Source: Octopus bimaculoides (lineage: Eukaryota). Taken from it: DNA of 64,000 nt. The stretch is taken from positions 2,985,234-3,049,233 of the forward strand of contig NC_068987.1 in the NCBI RefSeq assembly GCF_001194135.2, read 5' to 3'. Position numbers and translations under genes: made by a program. Of the stretch, positions 17,478 through 51,200 are shown in pieces. The notes below the pieces were generated by a model. The model worked only from the letters and a program-made list of their open reading frames with translations. It did no database searches and was not told where the DNA came from. Position 1 is the first letter of the stretch, and each line of letters starts with the position of its first letter.

Positions 17478-17665
17478 GTATGTCTTTTTCAAATGTATTT
17501 TACAGGAATGTTTATGACATTTTAAATTATAACTTTTACTCAATCATCACAAAAATTATGTATATTATCATTCACATTCATTTTTATATTGGTCCTGCAA
17601 TATTTTCATTTCATTCTACCTTTTTTTTCTTTCTTTCTTTATTTCTCCTTTAGTTAAACAGAATT

Positions 17666-19036
17666 ATGAAACTAAAACAACGAACCCTCTTTCTACTTAT
17701 ATGTGTATGTGGTGCAGTAACCTTCATGCTGTTTAGCAAATGGTATCACAGCAAAGCATTAGAAAGTATAGAAGTTAGGAAAAAGATGGTAGACTGCAGG
17801 CTTCTATTTAGAGTAGATCTTGACTATGTCAAAAAGGTTAGCTTAATAAAACAAAATAACAATACAGATACCATTTATCATCTGAAGAAACTTTCAGAAA
17901 ATTGTTCCAATTTCCGTCTGCAACATGGATATTTTAGCAAACTGGTTACTCAAATGGAGCTCGATTACCCAATTGCATTTGCTATCAAAATGTATGACAA
18001 ACCAAAGCAATTTGAAAGATTATTAAGAGCAATCTACTTACCACATAATGTTTATTGTATCCATGTTGATGCGAAGACTGATAACAGTGTATTTGAACTG
18101 ATAAAAAGCATCAGCATGTGTCTACCAAATGTTGTACTTGCAGAGAATCGAATAAATATTGTTTATGCTACATTTAGGCATTTACAAGCTGAACTAGAAT
18201 GCATGAAGGCATGCATCAAATCAAATGTAAAATGGAAATACTACATAAATCTTACTGGCCAAGAATTTCCATTGAAGACAAACCTGGAATTAGTTGAAAT
18301 TCTGAAGATTTTCAATGGAACGAACGATATTGAAGCATACAAGCACCCTAAAACTTTAGATTGGCGTGTAAAAAATAAGATAAAAATCAATGAGAAATCA
18401 CTGAGTATAACAAATGAAAGCAAACTACCATTGAAATATCAAATACAGTTGTATAAAGGAAGTGCCTATGGGATGTTTTCACGAGACTTTGTTGAATTTG
18501 TCTTGGAAGATGATGTTGCAACGACCATTCTTAATTGGATGAATGATACATACTCACCAGAAGAAAATATCTGGTCAACTCTTAATTCCCTAGAATTTGC
18601 CCCAGGTGGCTCTGGTGGCATTGAAATCCGACATGATAAACATCACTTTGCCTCAAAAGCTGTGATATGGGACTGGGATCCGGTTAAATGTTTCGGTAAA
18701 TCAATACGTAGTGTTTGTATTTATGGTATAGGAGATCTTCCATGGCTCAAAAGCCGTCCCCAAATAGTAGCCAATAAATTTGACGAAGATACCGATTCTA
18801 TTGTCTTAGACTGTTTAGAAGAGTTGTTAACAAACAGAATGCTAATCCAAAATGATGATCAGCTCAACTGGCACTATTATCATAATCTTCCACATGTCAT
18901 GCATAATGCAAAACTCAAAGCCAATGAAAAAACAAAAGAATTCCTGCAAAGCAAGAAAAGAAAATGGCTTTTGCAACAAGAACAATTTCTTAAACCTGTG
19001 ACAAAGAGACAGAATATTACAGTAGCAAAACAATGA
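17666..19036 (+). CDS. GCNT: Beta-1,6-N-acetylglucosaminyltransferase (core-2/I-branching, GT14), type II Golgi membrane protein, 456 aa (463 aa with the upstream micro-exon)
   Basis: Uninterrupted ORF; N-terminal hydrophobic anchor; motifs PIAF..ERLLRAIY.P.NVYCIHVD.K, WKYYINLTGQEFPLKTN.ELV, YKGSAY, DTYSPEE (catalytic Glu position), RSVCIYGIGDLPWL, ANKFD. GCNT1/3/4 subtype cannot be assigned by eye. Confidence 0.93.
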   Translation: MKLKQRTLFLLICVCGAVTFMLFSKWYHSKALESIEVRKKMVDCRLLFRVDLDYVKKVSLIKQNNNTDTIYHLKKLSENCSNFRLQHGYFSKLVTQMELDYPIAFAIKMYDKPKQFERLLRAIYLPHNVYCIHVDAKTDNSVFELIKSISMCLPNVVLAENRINIVYATFRHLQAELECMKACIKSNVKWKYYINLTGQEFPLKTNLELVEILKIFNGTNDIEAYKHPKTLDWRVKNKIKINEKSLSITNESKLPLKYQIQLYKGSAYGMFSRDFVEFVLEDDVATTILNWMNDTYSPEENIWSTLNSLEFAPGGSGGIEIRHDKHHFASKAVIWDWDPVKCFGKSIRSVCIYGIGDLPWLKSRPQIVANKFDEDTDSIVLDCLEELLTNRMLIQNDDQLNWHYYHNLPHVMHNAKLKANEKTKEFLQSKKRKWLLQQEQFLKPVTKRQNITVAKQ

Positions 19037-23076: not shown

Positions 23077-23123
23077 ATGGAGAAATATGAGAAAATTAAA
23101 GTGGTTGGGCGTGGTGCCTACGG
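23077..23123 (+). CDS. NEK8: NEK8 exon 1 (too short for the ORF track)
   Basis: [21 protein letters not shown]|gtaggt. Confidence 0.9.
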
Positions 23124-26300: not shown

Positions 26301-29300
26301 TTATGGAAGACCAGCAGTCACCCATGCATACCAGCCTCCCCTCTCACGCCACTGATGTTATCCAAGGGAAAGGCAAAGGGGCCGATACAGCTTGGCACCA
26401 GTGATGTTGCAGCTCATTTCTACAGCTGAGTGAACTGGAGCAATGTGAAATAAAGTGTCTTGCTCAAGAAAACAACACCCAGCCCAGTCTGGGATTTGAA
26501 CTCACAATCTCACAATCAAAAGCTCGACGCTCTAACCACTGAGCCATGCGCCTTCACACACACACACATACACACACACATATATATATATATTTAACAT
26601 CTATGTTCCATGCAGGCATGGGTTGGACTGCAGTTTGATCTGGTAGTGGCAGTGGCGATGGTGGTGATGCTGCTGCTGCCGGGTGAACGGGGTGATGGTG
26701 GTGGTGGTGATGAGGATGAGGATGACGTATACAAAAACATACTTTTCCTTGTTTTTATTTAATTTTTGTCCCCAAAATTGTTATATTCTTGTTAAAAGTG
26801 GATATTTATGTAAATTCAATCTTAATCAATTCCAGAACTGTTTATCTTTGCCGTCGCTTGAGTGACAAGAAATTATTAATCATTAAGCAAATACCAGTGG
26901 AACAGATGACTAAAGATGAAAGACAGACAGCTTTGAATGAGGTGAAAGTTCTGTCGATGCTTAACAACCCTTTTATCATCAAATATTATGAGAACTTTCT
27001 AGAAGACAAAGCCTTAATGATTGTCATGGAATACGCACAAGGTTTGTATATTTAAGATCCTTTCCACTGTCATTGGTCGTGAGGGTGAGGTTGACAAGTC
27101 TGATTCCCAACCACATGGTCCTGGGCTCAATCTCAATGCATGACACTTTGGGTAAGTCTCTTCTGCTATAGTCCCAGGCTAACCAACGTTTTGGGAGTGG
27201 ATTTGTTAAAAGGAAACTGAAAGAAGCTTGTATGTATATGTATATATATGGTGGTTGTCTACTCCTTAAACAGAGTTTGACCACCTCCTGCACCTACACC
27301 TTAGCCCTTTCATGGCGTCTGATGTGGCTTTTTAAACCAGACAGTGTTTTGAAAAAACACCCACACAGATTGCACCTCTGATTTGCACTACCAATACCTG
27401 CAAGTAAGTTCTGCTCATTGTGGATCCTAACATGTCTTTTAAGACCCCCATTGGATTTGCAAACCCTCTGGCACACACCACATTCAAATGTGTATATATA
27501 TATATATATATATATAGTAATATAAATAATATATATATATGTGTGTGTGTGTATTTATATATATATATATATATATGATCAAAGACTTGTATTTCGTGTT
27601 GCAAGACAGTGTGTGAGAGAGAATCATGATATGTAGTAGGAGAGAAATGTGTCCGCTTGGATGATGACTCACTTGCACTAAACGAGGCTGCAAAGAGAGA
27701 GAGGACTGGAGACACCACTATGAAAGGCTGCTTAATAAAGAGAATGAATGGGAGGAAGAGAGTCTGCCGCATGTCGACCCAACAGAGGGACCAGCCATCC
27801 GAATTGACAGTACCTGGGTAGATAAAGCGATCAAGAGTATGAAGACAGGGAAAGCAGCCGGCCCATCAGGAATCACTGCAGAGATGCTCAAAATATCTGG
27901 CAGTGTCGGCTATAGCCTAGTCGCCCATATAGTTAATTTATTGGTTTGCTCAACAATGTGTCTGTCTGTTGCTGAAATACATTGGCAAAAGACACACACA
28001 CATAGACACATCATCATCATAATCTAATGTCTGTTTCCAGTGCTGGCATGGGTTGGACTGTTTGACAGCAACTGGTGGGCCACATGACAGGCCCAAGCTT
28101 TAATGTCTGTTTTGACATGGTCCCTATGGCTTGATTCTCTTCCTTATGCCAACCACTTTATAGAGTGTTCTGGGTGCTTGGACAGTTTCATCATCATTAT
28201 CATCATCGTTTAATGTCTGTTTTCTATGCTGGCATGGGTTGGATGGTTTGACTGAGGTCTGGAAAGCCAGTGGCTCCAATCTGATATGGCAATGTTTCTA
28301 CAGCTGGATGGCCTTCCTAACACCAGCCACTCTGAGAGTGTAGTGTAATGGGTGCTTTTTACATTCCACTGGCACAGGAGCCAGTGGGTGCTTTTTACGT
28401 GCCACCGGCATGGGAGCCAGTCACCAGATTTCAATTATAAAGCATTAGTCAACATGGGTGTGTGGTAGCAGACATGGCCCATGGCACCATGCATAGAATC
28501 AAACCCAGTTCCAAGCTGCTACAAGGTTGAACACACAGCTATGTCTATCTACATCCACTTTTGAAAGGCACCTGTAAAAGAAATTAGATTTATGCTTTCA
28601 AATGTTGGAATCATTAAAAATCTGGTTAATTAGTCATCAGGTTCGCTGATAATGTGCAGATTAGTGAAGTGTGAAACACAAGTGTCCTTTCCCCAGAACA
28701 ACCCAATTCAGTTTTAAAAGATAAACAACTTGTAAAATGAGATTAGAAGCCCAAAACATGGCACAAGTATCTACTTTACCATTGAACCTTTCCCACTTTT
28801 AGATAACAAACCTATATCTCTAATCTCAGCTATTTATTGTACTTCTCAGAAATTTCTCAACCCTCCCTTAGTGACTCGAATGTATGACATTGTGTTAAGG
28901 TGGCGAGTTGGCAGAATTGTTCCTGCACCGGAAGAAAAGGACCTAACAGCATTTCTTTTTAGTTCAAATGTTGTTGGAGTCCGTCCACTTTGACTTTCCT
29001 CCTTCCAGGACCAAGTAATTTAACAGTTAACTAATTGATTATCTGATGAATCATTTCATCCCTTAATCAATCCCTTTGTCAAAGTCTTTTTATAGCCATT
29101 CATCACTTCAGTAGCAGCCCCTCATCATTGATGAACCACTGTCTTCAGTGATGGACTGTTGTCAATGACAGACCATTGTCAGTGACGGACTCTTGACTGA
29201 TCAAGGTTTGTCACCAGTTGCAAACTAGTGACGGTCTTCTTTACCCACATAAGTTTTTAGAATATGTGTGTCACATGATCAGTGCTCATGTGAGTAAATT

Positions 29301-32300
29301 TCATGTGTCTTTGCATGTTTCATTTGGATTTGTGTGTGTGTGTGCATGTTATGTGGCCAGTGTCTATGTCTACCTACATGTGTGCATAGGGAGCATTTGG
29401 TATGAGACGATTGTATATGAGGAGATATATGTATATGTTGATCAAGTTGTGTCTGGTATGAAATATCTAGTTGGCATGTAGAAGATTATAGAGGAGTTGA
29501 GGGTTGTCATTAAGGCCCATTGTCAAAAACGGTATCCAGCTGTAAGAACAAATACTCCTATAAGCTGTACGTCGTCACCTGCTGACATTGAAAGGTGAAA
29601 GTATAAAACAGTATGGGAGAATAAAGAAAGAGACTATCTTACTGATTTGTTTCTTTATTCTTTTAAAGGTGGGACATTGTTTGAATTATTACAGAGCCGT
29701 AATGGACAACTTTTGGATGAAGAGGTCAGTATTTCTGTTTTTAACTTTTCCTTGTAATTTATAAAAGTGTTTGTCTTCTCATATTAACATGGACTGGGTG
29801 AATCTGATGGTATCTCTGCTTGTCTGACAGAAGAGTACTTCTATGTGTGAAGGCATGTGGCCTTGTAGTTAGAGTGTTGGATTTGTTATCATATGGATAT
29901 GAGTTCCGTTCCTTGACCAGGCAGTTCATTGTGTCCTTGAGCAAAGTACTTCATTTCCATTACTTCAGTTTGCCCGGCTGAATACTGGAACACCCCTCTG
30001 TCTCTCAGACTATCAACTTTCTGATGTCTCACAGGGTCAGCAATATCGAAGGGCTGAGAAGGTGTCCACATCTACTTGCAACTACATAAACATCTCGAAT
30101 CATCTCAAACATTCAAATAAATCAGTGTTCATTATGAGCGATGTCAATGATTGCTTGACTCTCTCTCTCTCTCTCTCTCTCCCCCCCCCCCNNNNNNNNN
30201 NNNNNNNNNNNNNNNNNNNNNNNNNNNNNNNNNNNNNNNNNNNNNNNNNNNNNNNNNNNNNNNNNNNNNNNNNNNNNNNNNNNNNNNNNNNNNNNNNNNN
30301 NNNNNNNNNNNNNNNNNNNNNNNNNNNNNNNNNNNNNNNNNNNNNNNNNNNNNNNNNNNNNNNNNNNNNNNNNNNNNNNNNNNNNNNNNNNNNNNNNNNN
30401 NNNNNNNNNNNNNNNNNNNNNNNNNNNNNNNNNNNNNNNNNNNNNNNNNNNNNNNNNNNNNNNNNNNNNNNNNNNNNNNNNNNNNNNNNNNNNNNNNNNN
30501 NNNNNNNNNNNNNNNNNNNNNNNNNNNNNNNNNNNNNNNNNNNNNNNNNNNNNNNNNNNCTCTTGTCGCAGAGATTTCCCAACTTTCCCCTGTTCCAGTT
30601 ATTATCACACACCCCCGCCACACACACTCACATGCATGCAGCCCCTTAGTATTAACTGACTACATTTAGTGGTGGTCACTGCTAATTGAACTTGTATTGC
30701 TCACACACCATCTTTCTAAGGTGTCAAGCTGGCAGAAACGTTAGCACACCAGGTGAAATGCTTTGTGGTATTTCGTCTATCTTTATGTTCTGAGTTCAAA
30801 TTCTGCCAAGGTCGACTTTGCCTTTCATCCTTTCAGGGTTGATAAATTAAGTACCAGTTGTGTACTGGAGTCAATCTAATTGACTGGTCCCCTCCCCAAA
30901 AATTTCAGGCCTTGTGCCTAAGTAGAAAAGACACCATCTCTCTGAAGAGCATCTCAGGCTGTTAGAGTTTCTTGAGCAAGGAAGACTTTTCCAAATTATG
31001 CTTATGGTAGGGTTGAACTCAGCACTACAAGTACAAGTCCCTCCATCACATTCTAACCTCTCATCACCCAACACAAAGCCACCTCCCTCAAGACTGTCCC
31101 ACCCACTCTCAACTGAGTGGAGTCTTGTCTTGTAAGTTACGTGGTAAACTCACTGGTGCTAGTGTCAGATAAAGGCACCCAGTCCACTCTGGAAGGTGGT
31201 TGGCATTAGGAAGGACACCCAACTGTACAAACCAGGACAAAGCAGACAGCAGAGCTTGGTGTAGCCCTCTGGGTTGCCGGCCCCTCTCAATCCATCCAAC
31301 CTCTGGGAGACAAATGTGAAATTGGGATTGGAAAATGTCTGTAAATCTGTTTGTTTTTATTTTTCCTTCACACAGGTCATCCTGCATTACTTTGCTCAGA
31401 TGCTGTTGTCTCTTCAACATGTTGACTCCAAGCAAATTCTTCATCGAGACCTCAAGACACAGAACATACTCCTAGATAAAAAGAAACAGATTGTCAAAAT
31501 CGGAGACTTTGGCATTTCCAAAGTTCTTAGCAGCAAAAGTAAAGCTTATACGGTAAGACTAGTTGTATGGAAGGAAAAGGAATGAAAGCATTGGGGATGA
31601 GAGAACAAAAATGATAATAAAGGACCATTTTGTGTGTGTGTGTATGGGTGGGTGGTGGTGGTGGCTGATTTATGGCTGAATGAAGATTAGAGGTGAGATG
31701 GAATCAGAGAAGAGTTTAAAATGAGGAATTTTGAAAAATTATAGATGAAAATTTTGTCTCAGAGTTGTAGAAAATGTGGTAATGTGGAATAAAATCTAGC
31801 GAACAGTGTTGTGTTAGATATAAGTGAACACTAGAAAATTACTATTTGTAAATCTCAATGAGAGATATTCAGCAACAGTACTTTGGAGTAAAGATTGTTT
31901 GCCAACATAACATGGCAGTCCTGGTTTAGGATGAATGTTGCTGTAACTTAGCCCCAGGAGACATTGTCTCCAGCTGGCTTTAGGACACGATCTGTGTCCT
32001 TATATTTTCAAACAAGGGAATCTAGCACCCCCACTCAGTCCTAAACCAGGACCGCCATGTTATGTTGGCAAATAATCTTTACTCCAAACATTATGCCTGA
32101 ATAAAAGATGGGATAGTCAAGGTTGGATTGTCTTTTATCATATCTGCTCCATGAGGGCTGACCTGAAGGCTCTAGAACAACTACTTCTACTGCTTTTACT
32201 AATACTACTACTACTGTGGCTGTTGCCACTACTACAACATTACCTCCAGAAAAGTATTATTAACTATTAACTGGAGAATCACAAAGGTTAAGACAAGAAA

Positions 32301-34802
32301 TAGGAAGTTGTGAAGTTCATGTCAGCTTCTAAGTGAAGGTTTGTGCCATAGAGGTTGGAGCGAAAGGTTTTGTGGAAAATCTGCTTGTGATCTTCTGAAA
32401 CATCTCTCTTGAAAGAACAAGACCAAAGCCTTAAAGGTAATATCAGAGACATCAGAGAAATGCTCCAGCTGGATCTGGTTGAGGTAGAACAAAGACAAGC
32501 TCAATGCCTGTTGAAGGCAATGTTTTTGTATTTCGGTGCTAAAGGAAATAACTGTGAGGGAGTCGTTGCCATGGCGTCGACGTTTCACTGCTACCATGAC
32601 AACCAGCGTTATTTCTTTGGGAACTGAATCAACAGAGAGGAGTTCCAACTTGATGAAAACCTCCAAACAGTTTAAATACACGGGTCTCCAGTATCCAAGT
32701 AGCCAAAAAGTATCAACAGAAGGGCAGCCAAGAGTCGTGGACTGGACCCCTTAGAATGTAAGAAATTAAGGGGCAAAACACCTGCCCGAGCAGGGGTTCT
32801 TCTCCGAAGACCTTCTGCTGTTCAGCTCTCTTGAGAGTTTCTTACCACAAGTTGGAAATTTCAATCACAAACATTCCTGAGTTATTTCCCTTGTAACTTT
32901 CCACGCGCGTCTTGCCACTCAATTTTTGTGTCTTTCAGAATAGACACGGAGATGTAGCTGTGTAGTTAGGACGATCACTTTACATCCACATGGTCGTTGG
33001 TTCAGTCCCCCTGCGCAGCATATTGGACAGATGTTTTCTACTACAGCCTTTGGCTGACCAATGCCTTGTGAATTCATTTGGTCCACAGAAACTGTGTGGA
33101 AGCCTATCATATGTGTGTGTTTATTTGGGCCCACTATTGCTTGACAACCAGTGTTGGTTTGTTGATGTCTGCGTAACTTAGTGGTTCTGCAAGAGGACAA
33201 TTAACACAAATAACATTACAAGAAATCCTAAAACATCCTTATACATACGATAAAATAACTCCCAGTTATTAAAAAAAGCAAGTGCTGGCATTGATTTGTT
33301 CAAATAAACTCTTTGAGGTAATGCTCCAGCATGGCAACAGCAGTCAAATGATTGAGAAAAAGTTAAATATAATCGATAAAGATATAAAATGCATTTTCCT
33401 GTTGATCACAATGGTGGATTGCTGGATGTCGTTGGTTGAGTCTGATTATTTCTCTCCTGCCAGAAATAATTAATTTAGTGCTAACGCATCAAATTTGAAA
33501 TAATTATGGAGGTATGGGCGTGGTTGAGTGGTTAAGAAGTTTGCTTCCCAACCACATGGTTTTGGGTTCAGTCCCAATGTGGGGCACCTTGGGCAAATGT
33601 CTTCTATTCATAACCCCAGAATGGATTTGGTAAACGAGACGGAAAAAAGCTTGTTCTGTGTGTGTGTATGTGTATATATAACTGTTTAACTTGTTTCAGT
33701 CATTTGACTGTGACCATGCTGGAGCACCGCCTTTAGTTGAGCAAATCGACCCCAGAACTTATTCTTTGTAAGCCTAATACTTATTCTATTGGTCACTGTT
33801 GCTGAACCGCTATGTTACGGGGACGTAAACACACCAGCGTCGGGTGTCAAGTAATGTTGGGGGAACAAACACAGACACACAAATACATACACACACACAT
33901 ATACAACAATCTTCTTTCAGTTTCCACCTACCAAATCCACTCACAACGGTTTGGTCAACCTGAGGCTGTTGTAGAAGACACTTGCCCAAGATGCCATGGG
34001 TGGGACTGAACTCAGAACCCTATGGCTGGGAAGCAAACTTCTTACCACACAGCCACGCCTATGCCTGTGTGTTAATATCTCCTTGTCTTGGCATCATGTA
34101 ATTGTTGTAAATGAGCATCACTGTCATACAGGTTGTGGCCTTCATTTCCAATCTTCCATGAAAATATTTCAAGCCACAGGGAAATATAACCTTACTCAGA
34201 AAGAGTTGAGGGTTGGCAACAGGAATCAGAAGGGCCTGTGGTTATAGAATGAATCTCCATCTGACCCATACAAGCATGGAAAAGTGGACATTAAAATGAT
34301 GATGATGATGATGTGTTAAAGAAAGGACAACATCATTATCTGAATGGCTTAGAGTAGTTTGGTAAGAAAGGGAAACAACTGAGACATGTTTCAGCTGTAT
34401 TAAACCTCATAAGTGAAGTGCTTCTTCTACTGTTCTTGCTAAAGTATAAATCTATTTATTCTAAGTGTTTTAATTTTTCACACCTTCTCTCATATAACAT
34501 TGTTCCTCTCTCGTTAGTGAAGCTCTCATCATTACATTAGCAACTAGAGCGACACCTATGCCTAATTAAAACATGTCCACATCTCTTTCTATATTTGCTG
34601 AAATAATTAAAATAACATCAATCAATAGACTGACATTGTCTTTTCCTCACCACATAATTATTTCCAACTAGAATCGTTACATTAAATATGTTAACACAAA
34701 CTTAACTATTATTATTCCATGCTGATGATGTCTCTGAGTTATTAACAGTGGTTTATTGATATCCAATATGTTAAAAACAAATTCACAAACACAAATTTCC
34801 AG

Positions 34803-34835
<33 letters not shown>

Positions 34836-37800
34836 TGTGAGACACATTACCTTTTACCAAAGCTTCTCTCTTCCAGGTTGTTGGTACCCCGTGTTACCTG
34901 TCTCCCGAACTCTGTTCTGGAATGCCGTATCCTTTGTTTCAAATATCACAAAACATCCCACTTCTGTTGTCGTTCACCAACACACAATTTTGGTGTGTTT
35001 TGCTTTTATAATATTCTTTGTTTTCAAGGCAAAGATCTGCCAGAATCGTTGTCATGCTGGGTAAAATGCTAAGCGTCATTTCGTCTGTTTTTATGTTCTG
35101 AGTTCAAATTCCATCGAGGTCAGCTTTGCTTGTCATCCTTTCAAACTTGATAAAAACAAGTACCTGTAATATACTGAGGTTCAATGTAAGGATTTGCTCC
35201 TTCCACCAAAATTTGAAACCAATATTCTTTCTGTTTTCTACCAGATTAGTTTATCACTAATCTCTATCACATGTCACAGTCAATAAATATTTTTCCCAGA
35301 TTTCTAGCAATGTGCTGTCCTTGAGAAGACCTCCCAAGCCAAGTGAAATCGTAGTCGTGGCTGATGGTAGTGTCATGTAAGTGGTATTTAAAAAGCACAT
35401 TTCAAGTGTCGGACCTCATGGAGGCAAAGCAACTGATGCCGGTGGCACGTGAAAAGCTACTTTTGAATATTGGGCCTCACAGAGGCAATGACCAAGACCT
35501 TTGGCATTATGTCATGCTTGAGAGGCTAAGTCAATTACATGGCCCCAGTATGCAACCGGTACTTATTTTATAGACCCCCCACCCCAAGGATGAAAGACAA
35601 AGTTACCCTTGGCAGAATTTGGACACAGATGCTGCTAAGTGTTTTACCTGACATGCTAACGATTCTGCCAGTTTGCCACCTTAATTACTAATAACAGCTA
35701 GAATTACAAAACGGTTAGGGGGTCATGTTAGGGGTCACGTATTTACTGGACCTAAAATTACTGACCTAGAAACGTGTTTCCTATTCTGTTATTCCTTAAC
35801 CAATTACAAAGATATAACCAAAAAAGTGACATCTGGGCTCTTGGTTGTGTTCTTTATGAAATGGTTACTCTGAAACGAGCCTTCGAAGCATCGGTAAGTA
35901 ACAATTTTTTAGTTAACCTCAACAATTGGCCAACATTTTTATTTCCAGAAAATATCACGGTAGTAAACACCAATTGATTTTCACCTCTTCTCGACTGTCA
36001 TCTCTTGACCTTTCACCTTTCAACCTTCATCTTTTAACCTTCAACTTCTTAATCTTTAATATTCATCTCTTAATCCTCTCCTTTAATCCCAGTTTCTTTC
36101 TACATTGTTTACTTTTACATTTATAACATAATAAACATTATAAATTGGTTAAAAATGGTAATTATTTAGCCCCACAAGCACTTCAGCAGTGGCTGAGGAT
36201 TGAACCAGATACTTCAGTTTGTTATTCAACATCTTGTTTGGATTCACTCACACTGCATCGATCGTCGCACAGAGTACCAAGGGTCACGACCAGGGGTGCC
36301 GGTTCTGGCACCTGCATTCGACAAGTCAACTACAGAACCAAACTCAAAATCGAAATTTGCCAGATGCAAGCATCCTGTTAAAGTATCGACTTTCAATGGA
36401 AGAACTTTTGGGATGTTAAATAATGCTGTTGATGATGAATCCATTATCCAGTGGTATTGGACACTATAATCTCCAGTTTGAGACAAAAAAGAGAGGAAAA
36501 TACACTCCTGATACAATCTGTAGCATCGATAAATTCAGGAACAATTTAAAATGTCTTCTGCTTTACACTGATATTCCTTGACTGGAATGGTTTATTTGTT
36601 GGATAAAATGTTCTCCTTTCAGACAAAGAACATCCCTGAAATGTTAGATTCCTCTCCTCTTCGCAGCATGCAACCTTATTGAAACTCATAAGCTGTCTAT
36701 TTATCTGTCTATCTATTGATCTGCTGTCTATTTATCTGTCTATCTATTGATCTGCTGTCTATGATCTGTCTATCTATGTGTCTATCTGTCTATCTATCTA
36801 TCTATTGATCTGTCTATCTATGTGTGTCTATTTGTCTATCTATCTATTTGCCTCTCTGCCTATTTATCTCTCTATTTTTTTTTCAATTTGCCTATCTATC
36901 TGTCTATCTATCCTCTTATGTACCTCACTATCTGTTTGCTTATTTTATAAGTGTATCTATGTAATTATTTACTGACCAAATTGTCTGCCTGTTTATTTGT
37001 CTCCTTGTCTATCTGTCTATTTATGTCTATTTGTCTCTCTGCCTATTTATCTATCTGTTTATTTATCTGCCTATTCATCAATTTGTCTATCTACCTATTT
37101 ACCATCTCTCCCAGAATCTTCCAGCTTTGATCATCAAAATTGTTGGAGGAACCTTTGAACCAATTCCTGATATTTACAGTGAAGAATCGCGATCACTCAT
37201 TCTAAGCATGCTTCACCGAGATCCTAGCAGACGACCAACCATAAACCAGATTATCACACAACCTCGAATTATTAATCATGTTCTCTATCTTTATACTGAC
37301 TGGGGCAAAATTCCATCAACCAGGTTTGTAAACTTTTTGTTCGTTTTATGGATTGTTAAGTTCTATCATCATCATCATCATCATCATTATTTCATCATCA
37401 TCATCTTCATCATTGTCATCGTCATCATCATCACCAGCAATACTGCAATATTGGTGAACTGGCTTCATCTGTCTTTACATTTTGAGTTCAAATTCCGCTG
37501 AGGTCGACTTTGCCTTTCATCCGTTCGAGCTCGAAAAATTAAGTACCAGCTGTGTACTGGGGCCGATCTAATTGACTGGCTCCTTCCCCAAAAATTTTGG
37601 GCCTTGTGCCTAGAGTAGAAAAGAATATTGGTGAACTGGTATTTAGGTTGTACTAGCAGGGAGTTCTAGGGGACAGCATGCATGACCCACACCCAGCTTA
37701 GTGAGATTGAGGCAGCTGATGTTTTGTTTTTGAATTCCTGTCAATCAGATGTCTTCAGGTCCAATGTGAAAAATAAGGTGCTAAGGTTTCCCGAGGGATG

Positions 37801-39334
37801 CAGCGTAGCGCTCAGGTGAAGAAGGACACGTAAAGTGTTTATGTAGCGGATCTGGGAAGTGAGAGTAAGGGAAGCAGAGAGATGTGGAGGAGACGGTGTA
37901 CAAGTTGGGAAGGGGTAAAGGATATTTTGTAGTTGTGGGGGGAAAAAGGGGAAAGACTGAGTAAAGTAGCCTGAGAAAGATTGGGAAGGGGAAGCAGTTT
38001 GCATATATAATCATGAAGTCATCATCATCATCATCATCGTTTAATGTCCATCTTCCATGCATGTATGGGTAGGACGGTTCACAGGAGTCGGCCAGGTGGA
38101 AAAACTACCCTAGGCTACTGTGTCTGTTTTGGCAGGGATTTTACGGCTGGATGCCCTTCCTAACACCAACCATTCCGCAGAATGGACTCAGTGCTTTTTA
38201 CGTGGCACTAGCACAGGCAGTGTTAGTTTTGGCAAGATTTTTACAGGGTAGTGCTATTTGAAAAGATCCTGGTACAGAAAGCTTGTAAGCATCAAGCACT
38301 TACACAGCTTGTGTAGATGACAAAAAGCAGATAATATGTGATAAAGAAAGTTTAATAACTGTCCTCTCTTATATACTTTGTCCCATTTCAAAATCAATGC
38401 AAATTTCAATAAAGTGACAGCTACCATACAACTTACAGTTTAGCAACAAAACTTGCTAAGTATGTGAATATAAATCAGAATGTAAGGAACGGAAAAGGTA
38501 AATAAAGACTACATATGTTTCAAAGTTAAACTTTATATGTCTTACATAACTCATAACACATACAAAAACGGTTTAGTTAATCCTCAGGTTCAATTACCTT
38601 CAGTTGTTTATATCATTGCATAGAGAAGAGTGAACAATTCCCTAATTTGGCTACAGTAAAATGGTAAGTGGAAAAAGTTATTCAGTTGCTGCAACTATTT
38701 GAGAGCTGAATCCGTACATATTTCATCTTCTCTTTTGAGCTCCCAGTTACCTCCCCCTCTCCCAAAAACCACTTCCTTTTAAACTCCATCTCTTATTTTC
38801 ATTATCATCCTTTCCCATACTACTTTCCACCATTTACCTCTTTCTTGTGCCTTCAATCGTCTCTCCCTTCCTTCTGAGCTGTCTTGCATGTTACTTAGCG
38901 GCCTCTGGTGTCCATTTTAGTGGTCTGCCAAAATGGAGCTGGTAAGGCCAAGAGCCACACCAGGCACTTTCGTCTGTTCTCGCATGGTTTCTATGGCCGG
39001 ACGCTCTTCCTAATGCCAACCACTTTACAGAGTGTACTGGGTGCTTCTTATGGGGCACCAGCTCTGAGTCTAACAACCACAGCAATAACAATACCATGTG
39101 TTGTCTATCTACCAGGGTACAAAGACCATTGTCCAGTATTCAGCCTTCAGCACGGAACAGACAGTCAGTGAGAGGAGGCAATAATATAACAAACAGAGGT
39201 ATGTCTGATAATGTCTTCCATTCTACTTGATTGAGCGACCCCATAACTGCTCCCTGTTGGCTCATAGTGAAATGGTAGTGATTGTACTGTTTATAGTATA
39301 GTAGTAGTACTAGCGGTGAGGGTCATGTATGTTG

Positions 39335-39489: not shown

Positions 39490-41985
39490 GGTAGAAGTGG
39501 TTGCTATGGTGATNNNNNNNNNNCTGTTTGTCTGTCTGCCTGCCTGCCTGTTTGTCTGTCTGCCTGCCTGCCTGTTTGTCTGTCTGCCTGCCTGCCTGTT
39601 TGTCTGATCCTACTGTGTTGTTACATCAATATTGATATCAGCCATGATAAATATTTGGAAGATGTTTATATCAAAAGTTGTTGTCATATCATTAATAACG
39701 ATCAACCATTTCTTAGGATTGCTAAAGAAAACCACCACCACCACCACACACACATACACCACCACCATCACCTTATTGAATATCAACAGTTGTCACTAGT
39801 CATTGTGAGTCAATTAAAGGTTGCTTGTGTTGTTGTTGTTGTTGAAATAAAAGACATGGTTCCATGTATTTAGATTCATGTGGGGCAGTAACAGAATGAT
39901 TGTTAATGGAGAGGAAATAGATGTATTGATGTTTTTTCAGGATTCAATAAAGGCCCAACTTCATAAATCTATTTTTACAATATTGTTGCATTTATTACAA
40001 TCAACTTATCTAATGGCAATTAATAAGAAGAATAGACGAAGAACAAGTAATAAAATGATTTTATTCAAGACTGGTTGTGGGAAGGTTTGCATTGTTCTTA
40101 TATGTTGAGATACAATTATTAAAAATGTTACAGCAGCTGTGAGTACAGAGAACCATATTGCAGGAACAGGACATTTTAATGTTGTGTCAGGGACACAGGA
40201 AGTCAAGTTACTATCTTGCTCTGACAAAAGACTTTATCCTTAATCTTAAATATTTTCTCTTCCTGACATCAAACTTATTTCATTCAGTCAACAAACTTTT
40301 TCTACTTCTTACTTTTGTGAACATTGACCATTGTTCAGTTTCCTTCGATTCAACTGTAAAAGCCAGGAAGATGTGGGATTGTTGCTCTAGAAATATTTTT
40401 TTTGATAAAGTGAAAATAGATTTGTCGAAAGATACATTAAATATTTTGTGATTGTTCTGGTTGTTTGTTTGTTTATTAAGATACTCTCTCAGAGAAAGCT
40501 CAGGCTGCGAGTTGTGTGTATTATTGGGGAGGTGGCATTCCACAACCACTGAAATTAACTCTGCCAAGTTGTGACACCCAAGTTATTCAAGTGGCAGCAG
40601 GAAGAACGCAGAAAGCCGCTGTCACTAAAAGTGGTCGATTATTTGTTTGGGAGGTAAGGTTTATTATAAACATTTAGCATGGTACAACTGGTAGTTTCTC
40701 AATGTCAACAGCCTGCTGACATTTCATTATGATTATGATTATTATTATTATTATTATTATTATTAACACTAACAAAGGCAGTGAGCTGCCAGAATGGTTA
40801 GCATGTTGTGCCAAATGCTTAGCGGCATTTCATCCATCTTTATGCTCTTGTGGTGAATGAGGGAGATTAGAAGTAAGACACCTACCTTCTCTTCATTGAC
40901 GCAGTCCTCTCTGGTGGTAATGCACCCTTCCACGTGACCCAACCAGAACACTAAAAATAGCAGCTGCTGTCCCTCACCTTGTTGAAGCGCTCACACGTCC
41001 AGCGCTCTCGGTTACCCTGATCAAAAGGCCCAATCGTCCCCTGCCTGCCCTTGCTCTTCTGGTCAGTTCCCCAGCTACTGATGTCATCCCACAGTTCTGA
41101 GTTCAAATTCTGCCGAGGTCAACGTTGCCTTTCAACCTCTCGGAGTCAATAACATAATGCCAGCTGAGCACTGAGGTCAATGTAATCGACCTGGAAATTG
41201 CTGGCGTTGTGCCAAGATTTAAAAGCATTATTAACACTAACACTTTTACCTCCCCCCCACACACACACATAACCTCCTACACTCCTTATCATTTTCTTAG
41301 AATTCAATATATTTTCAAACACCATTCTTGCTTTACTTTGAGGAGACACCTTGAAAGATTAAGTTGTTTATTTACTCAAACTTGAAACTAATTTATCTTA
41401 ACAAATCTCCATTAATCACCAGAAACGATTTCTTTATCAACTACAAAAGTAAAACACTAAAAAAGAACTATTTCCCTTCCTCCCAAAATTTCCTCACTTT
41501 TAAATAATTCAGTTATGTTTTTCGTGGACCCTTATCGCTACAATACCACACCATACTGTTACTCTACTGTGAACAGATCTCTGACTATTTCATCCATGAG
41601 CATTCCATTTGTTTGATCTCAACTGAATGAGATAGCATCAAAGTGGTTGAGTATTCCACAGTTACCTGTGTACCTTAATGTAATCCTCAGGTAGAATCAG
41701 TGGGACCAGACCCTTGAATTACAGCTACAGGTTCCTTAAATCTTATCTCAACCAAGAGCAGGGATTGAACCAGGGCCACAATCATTTCACCATACTTGCT
41801 ATATTAATTCTATTCCATAAGATTATTCTACTTCACTAATATACACTAAAACAATACTATACAATAACTCTACTGTATTATAACTCTACTACTATACTGT
41901 ACTATACCAGTGCTTCCTAAACTGGGTTCCGTGACCCCTGGCAGTCTGCAGAGGTAGTACTAGGGGTCCATAAACTAAATTCAAA

Positions 41986-42035
<50 letters not shown>

Positions 42036-44258
42036 TATGTATGTATATATATATGCACATACACACACATACATTATAACCGAACAGAGAACAAAGGGAG
42101 CAGTCATTTAATTGCTGAGTGTTGCCAAATACTTAGAGATAAGCACAGTATCCTTGGGTAATGTCTACACATCAACAAACTATTTGTGGCTGGCAGGACA
42201 CACCTTTAAGAGTGACATCAGGTAACCATGGTAACACAATATATAATAGGGATGACCTCAACACCCAGCTTTATTATTTATATGACAATACTTATCTAAG
42301 CATGCCACTCACCTGACCCTAGCTAATTACTGGTTATTTTTTTCTACTAATTAAGTCACCTGAATATCAGTCTCTCCTTTCTGTCTCGAGTGAAACATTG
42401 TTAAAGATCTTTAATCTTCAATGAGACCATCATTCATTGTTCTTCAACTTTCAGAGTACAGGAATTACTACTGACAGTGTCTTACCTGGAGCTGTAGAGA
42501 ATTCTAGTCCTGCTTTTATACCAAGATACCTGGAAGGTCAAGCAGCCGTCACAATTCAACATGTTTCTTGTGGAGATCTTTTTGCTGCCTGTCTAACAGG
42601 TTAGTTCATTATAGCATCATCATCATCGTCATCGTCATCACCACAGATTCTGCACTCATCACTTTCTGCTGCGTTGTCTATTCTGTATTTCATGTAGTCT
42701 GTTCTTGGTGCTTGCTCCATTTCACAGCCTCCGTTTCTGGTTTTAAAAAAAGAAAAAAAAAATGGAACTGGAGGCTCTAAATTATAATTATTATTATTAT
42801 CATTATTATTATTATTATTATCATCATCATCATCATTGTCATCATCAATTGTCTTTTACAGATCGAGGAATTCTAATGACTCTGGGAAGTGGTGCCAATG
42901 GTTGCCTGGGACATGGCAACTTTAATGATGTCACTCACGTGAGTTCCAGATACTCTTCTCACATTTATAATGTTCACAAGATATCATTTTCTTTCAGCAT
43001 CATGTCTCCATGAATACCATCACCACCACTACCACCACCACCACCACTACCAACTACCACCACCACCACCACCATCATCCATCAAGTGAGGATTTCTGCC
43101 AAATTTGTGACTTTGGAGATTTGATATTCCACCAACATTTTCGGTACCCCCTACCCCTTGCTTTTGCTACGTTCACTTCTNNNNNNNNNNCCCTTGCTTT
43201 TGCTACGTTCACTTCTGCAGTTACCCATCATTCCCTTTGCATCTCCCCTTTAAGGACTCTACCATCCAACTCTTACCCCTTTCACTCCCCCCCCCCCCAG
43301 TCTTCAATCAGAGAATCTCAGTAAAAGTATGTTTCGTATTACTGAGCTGAGATACTCTCTGTGCAGATTTGAGCAAAGTACCCCACACACCTGTACTGGT
43401 GTCAGGAGAGGAAACACCACTCCTACCATGCCTTCCCTGCCGCAAGTCATAGAAACCAAACCAAAACAAGTCTCATATGAGATCCAGTGTATGAGAGGAG
43501 TGGTGGCCCTTTATAAAACCTATCCTTAACTTCTTTGCAAACCACACCTGTACTACTCTGTCTCAATATTCACACCTGTCAGGTGACAAACCAGTAGAAT
43601 CATTGGCATGCTGAGCAATATACTTAATGCAATTTGTCCACCTTTATGTTCTGAGTTCAAATTCCACTGAGGTTAACTTTGCCTTTTATCCTTTCAGGGG
43701 TCAATAAAATAAGGACCAGTTGTATACTGGGGTCAATGTAACTGGCTTACCCCTCCCCTAAATTTGCTGGCCTTGTGCCAACATTTGAGACCAGCATTTA
43801 CACCTGTCCTTATCTTCCTTACTAGCCACACCTGTACTAATCTCTACAGCTGGGCCCTCTGCTTTTATTGTCTCAAACCCTGGCAGTTGTAATACAATGA
43901 ACCAATGACCAAAAGTGCTCCAGCCATATCTTTGTATATTAGGGATTGCATTGTCCAAACTGTTCCTCTTTTTAGGACAGTAACAAGGGATTTGAGATTT
44001 GGCTGCTATTTTTTGCAAGTTGAGCTCAAGTTACAGCCCCAGTAGCTGACAGGAAGTAACTGTCACACGATCTCACTCACCACCACCACCACAATGACAA
44101 CTTCTCCTGTTAATGATGACAGCTCCAGTTCACAGACAGTAGTTGAAAAGAATCTGATCTGTAGACATTCAACCTAACAGCAAACCACATTAATATTTGT
44201 GTGAGAGGCTTGTTAGCATGTTTGGTGGTTAAAGACACTACGAATAAATAAATATTCT

Positions 44259-45693: not shown

Positions 45694-47973
45694 TGCATTT
45701 ATCTAGACGCTCTTAAACTTAAAATATATATATTAGTAGCTCCTTACTCCCAACAATGCAAAAGAGGAAAAAGAAACCATGGAAGACCCAAGACTGAGAT
45801 TCAAAGACACTGCAAAAAAAAGGGAACTTGAAGTGGAAAGGAATTGATCCCTAATATTGGTCAAATGCAAACTAAAAATTGACCATTATGGAGGAAAGTG
45901 ATCAAGTCATGCCAAAGCCACGAACAGTCCTAGTTCCAACGACTGACTGCAGGATGGGTAATGTGCACTGCTGTAATCTCTATTAATAGATGTGTACTAT
46001 ATTCTGTATTGGTCTCAAATTCTGGCAGGAGGCCAGTAACTTCAGGGGAGGCAAGACAGGTCGATTACATCAACCCCAGTACTCTATTGATACTTACAAG
46101 GTCGACCCCTGCAGCATTTGAACTCAGAACATAAGGTCAGAAGAAATAACACCAAGCATTTTTGCTGGTGGTCTAATGATTCTGCCAGCTTGTTACAATA
46201 TTAAACATTAGTATTCTGGTAGACATTAGTAACTAGTATTGTAAAGTACTATAATATATATTAGTGCCCGGTATATTGTATGTTAATACCTAGTACAGTG
46301 TTATGTAGAGGAGGGGGGGGCCTCCAGCCTTAGAAACCAAGCCGAAGCAGACAAAAGAACCTAGTGAGGCTCCTGGCCTTGCCCGCTCCCTGTCAAACCA
46401 GCCAACCCATGGAAAACAGATGCTAAATGATAATAATGGTGGTGGTGGTGGTGGTGGTGAGGAGGAGGAGAAGGACTATGACGACAATGATGCTGACGAC
46501 GACCGACCTAGTGTCATCAGTATCATAATTTTAACAACTGATTTAGTTTTCCATTCTGCACTCAATTTAATGATGTCTGTATTACAAGTTTTTGTCTGTG
46601 ATTTCTACCCCACCACTACCACCACCACCACCACCATTACACCCACCACTGACCTCTGTGGTTATGTCTTCCTCGTTCTTCTGATATATAGTGCCCCCCC
46701 CCNNNNNNNNNNNNNNNNNNNNNNNNNNNNNNNNNNNNNNNNNNNNNNNNNNNNNNNNNNNNNNNNNNNNNNNNNNNNNNNNNNNNNNNNNNNNNNNNNN
46801 NNNNNNNNNNNNNNNNNNNNNNNNNNNNNNNNNNNNNNNNNNNNNNNNNNNNNNNNNNNNNNNNNNNNNNNNNNNNNNNNNNNNNNNNNNNNNNNNNNNN
46901 NNNNNNNNNNNNNNNNNNNNNNNNNNNNNNNNNNNNNNNNNNNNNNNNNNNNNNNNNNNNNNNNNNNNNNNNNNNNNNNNNNNNNNNNNNNNNNNNNNNN
47001 NNNNNNNNNNNNNNNNNNNNNNNNNNNNNNNNNNNNNNNNNNNNNNNNNNNNNNNNNNNNNNNNNNNNNNNNNNNNNNNNNNNNNNNNNNNNNNNNNNNN
47101 NNNNNNNNNNNNNNNNNNNNNNNNNNNNNNNNNNNNNNNNNNNNNNNNNNNNNNNNNNNNNNNNNNNNNNNNNNNNNNNNNNNNNNNNNNNNNNNNNNNN
47201 NNNNNNNNNNNNNNNNNNNNNNNNNATAAAAGGAAGAGAAGGGACTGTAGGGGTTGGAAGATGGGGGGAGGTGAGAGAGACAGTATCAAAGAAACAAGAT
47301 GGAAGGAGGGGTGTAAGGCGGAGGGAGGTGACCAAGTGCATGTTAGAAAATCTTTACAGTGTAAAATGACCTCAGATCTACTCTAAAGAAAAATTTGGTA
47401 AATTGGAATATTATTGGGAGGGGGGGGGTCATTGGTGAATTATTCTGGGGTCTGGGAATATGTCCCCAGAAATTACAAACCTTGGACGTTTCGCACCGAC
47501 ATTTCTCCCCCTCCTGGGGCCATTGCGGAATCGTCTTTCTCCACTCTCCACAGACCTTCTGTGTTTAATAACCTGGGACTCCTTACCATCGTTACACATA
47601 TCATCATAACGACTACACAGTAATAACTTCTCTGTGCTATGATGATGATGAGGATGAGGAGGAGGAGGAGGAGGGTGATGGTGGTAGTGGTGTCCTCGGC
47701 GGTGATGGTGATCGGTGCTATCACCATCATCATCACCATCAGCATCATCATCATCATCATCATCTGCTCCATTACTGCTGTGACATCTCTAATATCTTTT
47801 CGCCTTTTTTTTCACTGTGCACCAGGCAAAAATAGTGGAAGCTCTTCTGGGTTATGAAGTGATGCAGGTGTCATGTGGTGCATCACATGTTTTAGCAGTG
47901 ACCAATGAACACGAAGTATTTGCTTGGGGGCGTGGAGATAATGGTAAGTGACATTAACAGAGAATTTATTCTC

Positions 47974-48231: not shown

Positions 48232-51200
48232 TATGGTGTTAGGAAAGGCATCCAGCTGTAGAAACTTTGCCAGAACAGATTGGAGCCTGGTGCAGCCTTC
48301 TAATGGCTCACCAGTCCTCAGTCACACCGTCCAACCCATGCCAGCATGGAAAACGGACGTTAAGCGACGACGATGATGATGATGATGCAAAGGCAAGTAC
48401 CTTCTACTACATCCCTGGACCAACCAAAACTCTGTGAGTGGATTTTTTTGTTAATGGAAACTGAAAGAAGCTTGTTGTGTGCGTGTGTGTGTGTGTGTGT
48501 ATGTGTGTGTGTGTCTCCTTGTCTTGACATTGTCTGATTGTTGTGAAAATGATTGTTTCTGTCATACATGGAGTATCGTTCAATACCAATATTCTGCAAG
48601 AACATGTCTGGCCATGGAGAAATATTACCTTATTTAGAAACAGGTAAGGGTTGGTGATAGGAAAGGCATCTGGCCATAGACAATCTGCCTCAATAAACTC
48701 AGTCCAACCCATGCAAACAGGTAAAAGTGGACGTTAAAATGATGATGATGATGAGGGTGATATATGTCTACATATGTCTCTCTATATATTGTAAACACAC
48801 ACACACACGTCACTGTCTTCATCATCATCATCGTTGATGATGTGTGTGTCTGTGTATGTGTATATCTACATGTGTATATCTACATGTGTATATCTACATG
48901 TGTATATCTACATGTGTATATCTACATGTGTATATATATGTACATAGATGCTACATATATGTGTTTAGTATTTTTAGCAAGTGGTCATCTGATGTCCTAA
49001 TTATTTACTCATTGACATCATTCTGTGTGCCAATTTGCCATTTCTTCATTTCATTCTTTGTCTTGCCTTTCTCAGGTCGTCTTGGATTAACTACTCAAGA
49101 GAGCTGTCTTTCTCCATCAGCTGTGCCGATTCCTGAAAATATGCAGCCATTTTCTGTCCACTGTGGTGTGGATAGTTCTATTATATTAACTGTGGACAAG
49201 AAACTTCTAAGTTGTGGCAATAACAGGTCAGTTGGTCCATTATAAATATCATGGGTAGTGAAGACCAGTATTTCGTTAATAATCTAAGGTGTTTAACCCT
49301 TTTGTTACCAACCTGACTGAAACCGCCTCTGGCGCTGGAGTACAAATGTCTTGTTTTCATAAGTTTTGAATTAAAATCTTCCACCAAACCTTAGTCACAA
49401 TTTATGTTCCTAACACTAGCTTAATGATAACTAAGTTATTTTACTAAATTCTTTGTTATATTTAAAATTAATTGAGAGAAACACAGAGCATCTCAACAGA
49501 AATATGGTAACAAAAGGGTTAAAATAATAGAAAAACAATTCTTAACCCTTTTGATACCAACCTGGCTGAAACTGCCTCTGGTGCTGGAGTACAACTGTCT
49601 TGTTTTCGTAAGTTTTGAATTAAAATCTTCCACCAAACCTTAGTCACAATTTATATATATATACATATATTTCTCTGTGTGTATGTACCTTTGTGTGTAC
49701 TCTTGTCTAGACACCACATGATGGTTGTAAATGAGTATCACTGTTATACAAGTGAGGTTGTTTGTTTACAGTGAACTGTACCATCCTCCATGAAAGCCAA
49801 TGGTTTCTGCCTTGGCATGACAAGTATCCCTGTCAAGATAGTGAGGTGTTAGAAACAAAACTAGAGCTTCATCAATTCTTCAATGTATGCTCCAGCATGG
49901 CAACAGTCTAATGACTGAAATGGACAATAAATGATAAATGATAATCTCTGTCATAAATTTTTAATTACACTAATTAATTCAATTAGATTTTTCAGCTTCA
50001 TAACTTTGTGTTTTGTATGTATTAGAGCTGCTTATTTGATATTTAGAGTGTTTTTTGATAATGTCTTTCATTTTAGATATAACAAACTTGGATTAGACAC
50101 AGAGGAAGAGAATGTTGATGTCATCTTTAAGTTCACTGTAGTCAGTAGGTCGCCTTTAGGTGAGAAAGAAATAAAAAATGTTGCACTGGGCACATCCCAC
50201 ACTGCAGTTGTGACAGGTAAGTTCTTGTATTAAGCATCACACCTCAATCCGACGGATTCCTCTCATATCATTCATATTTGATGTTTCTCATTAACTCCAT
50301 AATTTGTCCTAAATATTTTAATGATTTTCAACTTTAATGTTGAACTAATTATTTTTTACTCATCTTTGCGTAAATGAGGCAACATCTGTAAACATTCAAT
50401 TGATACGGATCACTGATTCTCAAACAGTTGATATGGATCACTGGTTCTCTAACAGGATAAATTAACTTGTTTCAACACTTTTCTCACTTTGCTATGGTTT
50501 TTCATGTTGTTCTCTTGTGAGCACAAATTACTTAGAATTTTGGAATTTATACGACAAAGTATTTCTAATGAATAAGTTTGTTCTTTATCTCAGTTGTCTG
50601 ACCAATATGACCAAAATACTTGGCTGAGTCGCAACATTTTGGCTATTTGATCCCATAGTTCTGAGTTCCAGCCCCTCAGCTTCTGGGATAGACCAAAAGC
50701 TTTGTGGGTGAAATTTAGTTTGTGGTAGAAGGTATAAACCTCTTTGGGTGACTGCCCTTATTTTAGTTGATCAACTGAATGCATCAGCCACTTTTAAACC
50801 CTCAATCAACCCTTGGGTGTCTTTACCTGATTTCATGTAGTTGCAAGCATTTGGAGCAGGTCTTCCATCTCAGGGTTACTTACTTTCTTTCTGTTACCAG
50901 CCCTGAAAAAAAGGACACTGCTCTTTCTCTTCTAAATAAATAGATAAATATCACGGTGGTGCTCCAGCATGACCACAGCCACTTGGCTGAAACCCATAAA
51001 TAAATAAATGGAGTCAGTAAGATTTTAGAAGGCATGGAGGTACATGGTTTTGGGGTTAAGGTGTTGGACTCACAGTCATAAAGTTGTGATTTCAATTCCC
51101 AAACTGAGCAGTCCATTAAGTTCTTGAACAAAAAAGACTCCTTTTTTGTTGCTCCATTCCACACAGCTGAAAATGTTGTATCCTAACAAGATGATCTGAC

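Follow-up and report, generated by a model that had tools for sequence, protein, structure and literature searches.

U12-type (minor) introns of the GT-AG subtype have been catalogued for human and mouse in MIDB, U12DB and IAOD, for example in TRAIP, TMEM107 and SCN5A, and in the introns.info resource every annotated intron is classified for over 1500 species (PMC10639083). According to the same study (Larue and Roy 2023), molluscs are relatively rich in minor introns, which are also present in Octopus sinensis; their loss occurs mostly by exact deletion, and de novo gain is very rare. In aligned genes, 136 minor introns are common to Saccoglossus and the mollusc Aplysia, and 102 of these 136 are also found in human. 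The use of cryptic U2-type (major) sites and exon skipping have been described beside the minor introns of human genes (PMC8034651, PMC6717393), and vertebrate cilia-related minor-intron genes such as TMEM107 are affected in RNU4ATAC or ZCRB1 deficiency (PMC9992838, PMC13216214). Here we describe intron 5 of the NEK8 kinase gene in a 64,000-nucleotide (nt) stretch of Octopus bimaculoides DNA (contig NC_068987.1, positions 2,985,234 to 3,049,233 of the forward strand; hereafter the window, in which positions are counted from the first letter). Taking all the evidence together, we consider this intron, with a probability of about 0.92, to be a genuine U12-type GT-AG intron that is ancestral to protostomes and deuterostomes and was later precisely deleted in several lineages.

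Splice signals of intron 5

The elements on which the description relies are the following.

34877 to 34926, forward strand: exon 5, 50 nt; U2-type acceptor at its 5' end and U12-type donor at its 3' end; ends with the first two bases of the Pro179 codon
34927 to 35811, forward strand: intron 5, 885 nt, phase 2, U12-type, GT-AG subtype
34927 to 34935, forward strand: 5' splice site GTATCCTTT; 9/9 matches to the U12-type donor consensus, 3/9 to the U1-type consensus
35792 to 35800, forward strand: branch-site element TTCCTTAAC; adenosine 35799, 12 nt short of the intron's 3' end, is the presumed branch point
35810 to 35811, forward strand: 3' splice site AG, preceded by the purine-rich spacer caattacaa and not by a polypyrimidine tract
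35812 to 35893, forward strand: exon 6, 82 nt; last base of the Pro179 codon and kinase subdomain IX, followed by the strong U2-type donor GTAAGT

Exon 5 ends with ...CTC TGT TCT GGA ATG CC (to 34926) and the intron opens at 34927 with GTATCCTTTG. At the other end, 11 nt (caattacaaag, AG included) separate TTCCTTAAC from exon 6, which begins at 35812 with A TAT AAC CAA AAA AGT GAC ATC TGG. Splicing of 34926 to 35812 yields SPELCSGMP|YNQKSDIW, with a phase 2 interruption of the Pro179 codon. The intron thereby separates kinase subdomain VIII, with its SPE (APE-type) motif, from subdomain IX, with its DIWALGC motif.

The donor of intron 5 matches GTATCCTTT at 9/9 positions; those of the 14 remaining NEK8 introns match it at 3-6/9. 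For the U1-type consensus MAG/GTRAGT the order is reversed, with 3/9 matches in intron 5 and 7-9/9 in the other 14; moreover, the intron 5 donor has a G neither at -1 nor at +5. The spacer that follows the branch site contains 4 pyrimidines in 11 nt. Over the wider interval -23..-4, branch site included, the pyrimidine content reaches 65%, a value that is equalled or undercut in two other NEK8 introns.

A U12-type intron is recognized by the donor /RTATCCTT at the exon border, the branch element TCCTTRAY near the 3' splice site, GT-AG termini, and a poor fit to U2-type signals. Intron 5 displays all of these, the last as weak U1 complementarity and the lack of a polypyrimidine tract between branch site and AG. 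The branch adenosine is expected roughly 10-15 nt from the intron end, and the 12 nt found here lie within the optimal range for minor splicing. Positions +1 to +9 of the donor are identical to those of the human and mouse minor introns of TRAIP, TMEM107 and MROH1, scored 93-99.5 in MIDB, and the branch core is identical to that of the mouse Scn5a minor intron, scored 96 (PMC6717393 supplement). By every sequence criterion applied, intron 5 is thus of the U12-type, GT-AG subtype.

Taken singly, the two motifs occur at the frequency expected from shuffled sequence: on both strands of the 64 kb, RTATCCTT was observed 5 times (4.9 expected) and TCCTTAAC twice (2.2 expected). The intron 5 donor and branch site are the only pair that lands exactly on exon borders set by protein homology with the correct spacing, and chance is therefore excluded for them. 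From base composition, we estimate the joint probability of such a coincidence in any of the 15 NEK8 introns at about 4e-7. Every RTATCCT site on either strand of the window was checked for an adjoining coding frame and a suitably spaced branch site, and no second credible U12-type donor was found. Two of these sites, at 42148 and 43523 on the forward strand, are intronic chance matches flanking real exons.

An earlier note on this DNA, made by reading the letters, had proposed the U12-type intron at 34927-35811 with a branch site ending 11 nt before the junction; direct reading and the gene model described below both confirm it, and the gene model also bears out the phase 2 position within the Pro codon and the splitting of the kinase between subdomains VIII and IX. 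The U1-consensus matches of 7-9/9 agree with its statement that the other 14 introns are U2-type. Its remark that a polypyrimidine tract is lacking holds for the 11-nt spacer but not as a distinctive trait of the wider interval.

The NEK8 gene model

The exons were located by tblastn and blastn searches with a cephalopod transcript, all borders were set at GT...AG sites, and the result was translated.

23077 to 53071, forward strand: NEK8 gene from start to stop codon, 16 coding exons, 678 amino acids
Exons 1-8, forward strand: 23077-23123, 26836-27041, 29669-29724, 31376-31552, 34877-34926, 35812-35893, 37115-37323, 39116-39198
Exons 9-16, forward strand: 40481-40653, 42455-42599, 42862-42938, 47826-47943, 49076-49226, 50077-50216, 51945-52106, 52911-53071

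An exact-sequence look-up showed that the product of this model is identical, residue for residue, to RefSeq XP_014773599.1 (serine/threonine-protein kinase Nek8 isoform X1, Octopus bimaculoides). Pfam assigns residues 4-256 to a Pkinase and residues 334-673 to an RCC1-like domain. In a search of 5.8 billion proteins, the named full-length matches were predominantly NEK8. Over the whole length, identity was about 65-71% with other molluscs and 57-60% with the listed full-length vertebrates; with molluscs, echinoderms and vertebrates considered jointly, it was 56-71% across 100% of the length. An orthologue of NEK8 was defined by an N-terminal NEK-type Ser/Thr kinase, C-terminal RCC1 repeats, a length of about 690 amino acids and NEK8 as the closest full-length similarity, and the octopus product has each of these features. 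The naming of the gene as NEK8 in the earlier note was thus right. Its concern that gene predictors may mis-model the junction was not borne out: the RefSeq model is the present model, and the Argonauta hians and Octopus vulgaris models agree with it across the junction.

Some further features of the annotation and assembly were recorded. The protein models of Argonauta hians and O. vulgaris share the same residues as octopus NEK8 across the exon 5/6 junction. In the O. vulgaris annotation, NEK8 is broken into two models (P0124/P0125; CAI9725164.1, CAI9725165.1), with the break elsewhere than at the minor intron; the first model terminates with ...NITNREYRNYN and looks as if exon 9 had been skipped and exon 10 read out of frame. 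In the window, runs of 10-721 N lie inside NEK8 introns 1, 3, 8 and 11 (for example at about 25.5-26.2, 30.2-30.6 and 46.7-47.2 kb). These assembly gaps touch neither the exons nor intron 5.

Transcripts across the junction

The use of the junction was read in RNA sequencing (RNA-seq) contigs from Logan assemblies of another cephalopod, with about 80% nucleotide and 78% protein identity to octopus NEK8. Two full-length contigs, L007 (SRR27666083) and L008 (SRR24189493), contain the junction ...TTATGTTCAG GTATGCC|TTATAACCAAAAAAGTGAT..., as predicted from octopus; their exon 5/6 join reads ...TCAGGTATGCC|TTATAACCAAAAAAGT.... The earlier note had suggested confirming the junction by RNA-seq, and these contigs use it as expected.

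A third contig, L001 (SRR24189498), is 100% identical to L007 and L008 apart from an exact deletion of 89 nt (L001 570|571), which fuses ...TGTTCAG straight to exon 7 (AACCTACACG...). The donor used in this isoform is a cryptic U2-like site, CAG|GTATGC, located 7 nt upstream of the minor-intron donor, and the 82-nt exon 6 is skipped, leading to a frameshift and an early stop. In this species the Gly codon is GGT and therefore creates a good U2-type donor, CAG|GTATGC. The octopus Gly codon is GGA, and this cryptic donor is therefore absent from the octopus window. Mis-splicing by the major spliceosome around the minor intron thus occurs in at least one other cephalopod. The unproductive isoform hints at a competition between the two spliceosomes at the NEK8 minor intron, but does not establish it. 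It is the sole slightly unusual element of the case.

Retention of intron 5 was followed by translation: the frame continues for 27 codons and then reaches a stop, in line with the truncation of the kinase anticipated by the earlier note. The product would be a kinase devoid of subdomains IX-XI and of the RCC1 domain, and the retained-intron transcript would presumably be a target of nonsense-mediated decay.

Presence and absence of the intron in other animals

The homologous NEK8 codon was read in fetched genomic loci.

Lottia gigantea (L009): intron present, 159 nt; donor GTATCCTTT; branch site TCTTTAAC, 10 nt to the intron end
Marine metagenome contig, bivalve-like (L012): intron present; donor GTATCCTTT; branch site TCCTGAAC, 10 nt to the intron end
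Second bivalve-like metagenome contig (L013): donor GTATCCTTC; 3' splice site beyond the end of the contig
Saccoglossus kowalevskii (L011): intron present, 366 nt; donor GTATCCTTT; branch site TCCTTAAC, 12 nt to the intron end
Branchiostoma lanceolatum (L002): intron present, 539 nt; donor GTATCCTTT; branch site TCCTTAAG, 16 nt to the intron end
Callorhinchus milii, elephant shark (L010): intron absent, coding sequence uninterrupted
Cathartes aura, turkey vulture (L004): intron absent, coding sequence uninterrupted
Bugula neritina, bryozoan (L005): intron absent, coding sequence uninterrupted
Eriocheir sinensis, crab (L006): intron absent, coding sequence uninterrupted

In five loci besides octopus, the intron interrupts the same Pro codon (CC|N) in phase 2 and has the donor GTATCCTT(T/C). 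A TCCTTAAC-like branch site was found 10-16 nt from the 3' splice site in each orthologous intron whose 3' end is available. The lengths, octopus included, span 159-885 nt. Beyond the two signals no similarity between the intron sequences was seen, which argues that the splice signals are held by selection. The metagenome contig with the complete intron is 82-85% identical to the NEK8 of heterodont bivalves (Ruditapes, Dreissena, Mya).

Three classes of molluscs, a hemichordate and a cephalochordate share an intron of one rare type at one and the same nucleotide, for which the simplest explanation is a NEK8 minor intron inherited from the bilaterian ancestor. In shark and bird, one 132-nt exon equals octopus exons 5 and 6 joined, and the introns on either side, one ahead of VVGTP and one following FEAA, are kept. 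The vertebrate loss was therefore an exact deletion and not a conversion to the U2-type. Read on the tree, the loci place the loss on the vertebrate stem, between the amphioxus split and the shark-bird ancestor, with independent loss in some protostomes. The MIDB lists of human and mouse minor introns contain TMEM107 and SCN5A, looked up as positive controls, but not NEK8, NEK9 or NEK1; what we say of human NEK8 rests on the shark and bird loci together with MIDB.

The earlier note had taken human NEK8 to lack an intron here and had left two origins side by side, an ancestral U12-type intron lost in vertebrates or a rare gain. The uninterrupted coding sequence in shark and vulture and the absence of NEK8 from the human and mouse lists agree with the former point. 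As to the origin, the intron shared by Lottia, the bivalve-like contigs, Saccoglossus and Branchiostoma speaks for the ancestral version and against a gain. The survey of this position that it had advised thus showed the U12-type intron in molluscs, a hemichordate and a cephalochordate, and its absence in shark, bird, bryozoan and crab. Its interpretation was largely right and is partly supported in a sharper form, namely that of an ancestral intron lost in vertebrates.

Several observations made on the same loci are given here in their own right. Intron 4 (31553-34876), of the U2-type and in phase 0, immediately precedes VVGTP. Octopus shares it with Lottia, the second bivalve-like contig, Bugula, shark and bird; amphioxus and Saccoglossus lack it, and the upstream intron of the crab lies a few codons earlier. 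The history of gain and loss of this major intron therefore differs from that of the neighbouring minor intron. The amphioxus intron contains, at L002 9757-9833, a tandem, slightly diverged copy of about the last 75 nt of the upstream exon, and this copy carries a second GTATCCTTT donor at 9826-9833. The annotated amphioxus protein (P0001) has a triplicated C-terminal peptide. These repeats suggest local duplications or assembly problems in the region. At L005 7485-7500, the Bugula exon reads GATATTGGGCCTTGGGC where the orthologues have GATATTTGGGC... One nucleotide appears to be missing, whether by a genuine frameshift or through an error of assembly, and as a consequence the gene is annotated as two models and the annotated protein (P0117) is cut short at 191 amino acids. 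Finally, L003 and similar ENA contigs show the NEK8 kinase region without introns, which says little beyond absence there.

Repeats and neighbouring features

A dispersed repeat resembling a short interspersed nuclear element (SINE), with the core TGCCAGAATCGTTRNCATG, has 6 copies in the window against 0.12 expected. Two of them lie in intron 5 in opposite orientation, at 35038-35056 (forward strand) and 35652-35670 (reverse strand), and could pair as double-stranded RNA in the pre-mRNA; the others are at 40787, 61305, 62057 and 62354. A general repeat search of intron 5 gave no inverted repeat, and these diverged copies emerged by pattern search.

Upstream of NEK8, the following features were noted.

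9690 to 10031 and 11847 to 12158, forward strand: exons resembling NUDT9 or the NUDT9-homology domain of TRPM2
17654 to 19033, forward strand: stop-free frame of 460 codons with a Core-2/I-branching enzyme domain (PF02485, E = 3e-42)

Only the 9690-10031 stretch of the first pair was searched; it matches ADP-ribose pyrophosphatase 1q33 and TRPM2 structures with E = 8e-14 to 1e-7. These exons fit the mention of an upstream TRPM gene in the earlier note. The 460-codon frame is probably a single-exon glycosyltransferase gene located between the TRPM2-like exons and NEK8. An Rfam scan of the entire window returned zero hits, and hence no small nuclear RNA (snRNA) gene.

Alternative explanations

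Several points weigh against our interpretation. The taxon sample is small, with one or two species per phylum and no tunicate, cyclostome, annelid, cnidarian or sponge locus nor any mammalian genome. How deep the origin lies, and on which branch precisely vertebrates lost the intron, is therefore only bracketed. The transcripts that cross the junction derive from the other cephalopod and not from O. bimaculoides, and show the gene of that species in spliced form only. The U12-type class was assigned by consensus matching and by cores identical to MIDB entries, and removal by the U11, U12, U4atac and U6atac small nuclear ribonucleoproteins is inferred from the sequence.

Within these bounds, one may ask whether the major spliceosome removes intron 5 and the U12-like motifs are coincidental, or relics in a converted or 'hybrid' intron. 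GT-AG termini are acceptable to both spliceosomes, the pyrimidine content of the -23..-4 interval (65%) lies within the values of the U2-type NEK8 introns, and minor-to-major conversion is documented in some lineages (PMC10639083). However, a donor with just 3/9 U1 matches and without G at -1 or +5 is a poor substrate for this explanation, and both motifs have the full consensus at optimal spacing. Moreover, both are kept in molluscs, a hemichordate and amphioxus amid otherwise dissimilar introns, as expected under purifying selection for U11/U12 recognition and not of a relic. We therefore regard removal by the major spliceosome as very improbable. Independent gains, in cephalopods or molluscs on one side and in deuterostome invertebrates on the other, appear slightly less probable still. 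They would account for the patchy distribution, with absence from the bryozoan, the crab and the vertebrates, but under them the lineages with the intron, three in molluscs and two in deuterostomes, would have had to arrive at the same position, the same phase (CC|N of one Pro codon) and the same type of intron. Minor-intron gain is, in addition, extremely rare and deletion common (PMC10639083), and the absences are exact exon fusions, as loss predicts. That the junction is an annotation artefact, the real transcript having other splice sites or another exon structure, has hardly any likelihood. Such a doubt could draw on the foreign origin of the transcripts and on the contig that uses another donor and skips exon 6. 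Yet this contig is frameshifted and lacks the conserved kinase subdomain IX, whereas the predicted junction is found in two independent full-length contigs of that species. Aligned with NEK8 across animals, the spliced product shows no gap, and the junction itself is unambiguous, the last exon base being C and the last intron base G. An ancestral U12-type intron, lost by exact deletion in some lineages, is thus the explanation that we retain.

Proposed course of splicing and evolution

If minor splicing proceeds here as in the established model, the donor GTATCCTTT of intron 5 would be recognized by U11 snRNA and later by U6atac, and the branch element TTCCTTAAC would pair with U12 snRNA, the branch adenosine lying 12 nt from the AG. 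Exons 5 and 6 would then be ligated within the Pro179 codon, and the major spliceosome would remove the other 14 introns. Because exons 5 and 6 are themselves bounded by U2-type sites, the two spliceosomes must cooperate across them; minor complexes would do so with U2-type complexes across exons of 50 and 82 nt. Protostomes and deuterostomes would have inherited the intron from their last common ancestor, in which it would already have been of the U12-type at the same position. Molluscs (cephalopod, gastropod, bivalve), hemichordates and cephalochordates would have kept it. Precise deletion, not U2-type conversion, would have removed it on the vertebrate stem and, independently, in at least one bryozoan and one crab lineage.

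NEK8 is a nephronophthisis and ciliopathy gene in humans. A more far-reaching proposal is that in cephalopods, and perhaps in invertebrates generally, the minor intron acts as a regulated throttle on this ciliary kinase: competition of slow U12-type splicing with U2-type sites close by, such as the cryptic CAG|GTATGC donor of the second cephalopod, would divert a tunable fraction of transcripts into a frameshifted, unproductive form, a control that vertebrates would have discarded with the intron. The inverted SINE-like copies of the octopus intron could add a further layer to such a throttle, via double-stranded RNA or RNA editing. We consider the whole proposal unlikely.

Under the ancestral-intron interpretation, NEK8 joins the genes that carried minor introns in the bilaterian ancestor, and the exact deletion of the intron in vertebrates gives studies of minor-intron loss a clean case that can be dated. 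Perturbation of the minor spliceosome should affect NEK8 in molluscs, hemichordates and amphioxus, but not in vertebrates. Annotation is unaffected, existing gene models being already right. Concepts of minor-intron function or evolution are unchanged, and the biological significance is modest.

Comparison with known minor-intron systems

A full-text search of the accessible literature found a NEK8 minor intron mentioned in no paper (the combination of NEK8 and U12 gave irrelevant papers only). Because RefSeq annotates the exon 5/6 junction, introns.info probably already holds an automatic classification of octopus NEK8 intron 5.

Octopus intron 5 resembles the catalogued GT-AG U12-type introns of human and mouse in its identical donor core GTATCCTTT and branch core TTCCTTAAC and in its short distance from branch site to 3' splice site, and octopus NEK8 resembles their host genes in having a single minor intron among U2-type introns. 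In contrast to those host genes, NEK8 is not a minor-intron gene in human and mouse, hence the absence of this intron from vertebrate-centred catalogues. The cryptic U2-type site and the exon skipping seen beside the NEK8 minor intron in the second cephalopod are similar to those of human minor-intron genes (PMC8034651, PMC6717393). Like the vertebrate cilia-related minor-intron genes, octopus NEK8 encodes a cilium-associated protein whose expression would require the removal of one U12-type intron. Unlike them, vertebrate NEK8 is without the intron; if NEK8 dosage depends on minor splicing at all, it would do so in invertebrates only. The closest parallel is with ancestral bilaterian minor introns lost toward human (PMC10639083): the NEK8 intron is present in Saccoglossus and molluscs and deleted in vertebrates. 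Whereas that study gives counts, the NEK8 case concerns one gene. Altogether, octopus NEK8 intron 5 is a textbook GT-AG U12-type intron, and its phylogenetic pattern also belongs to a known class.

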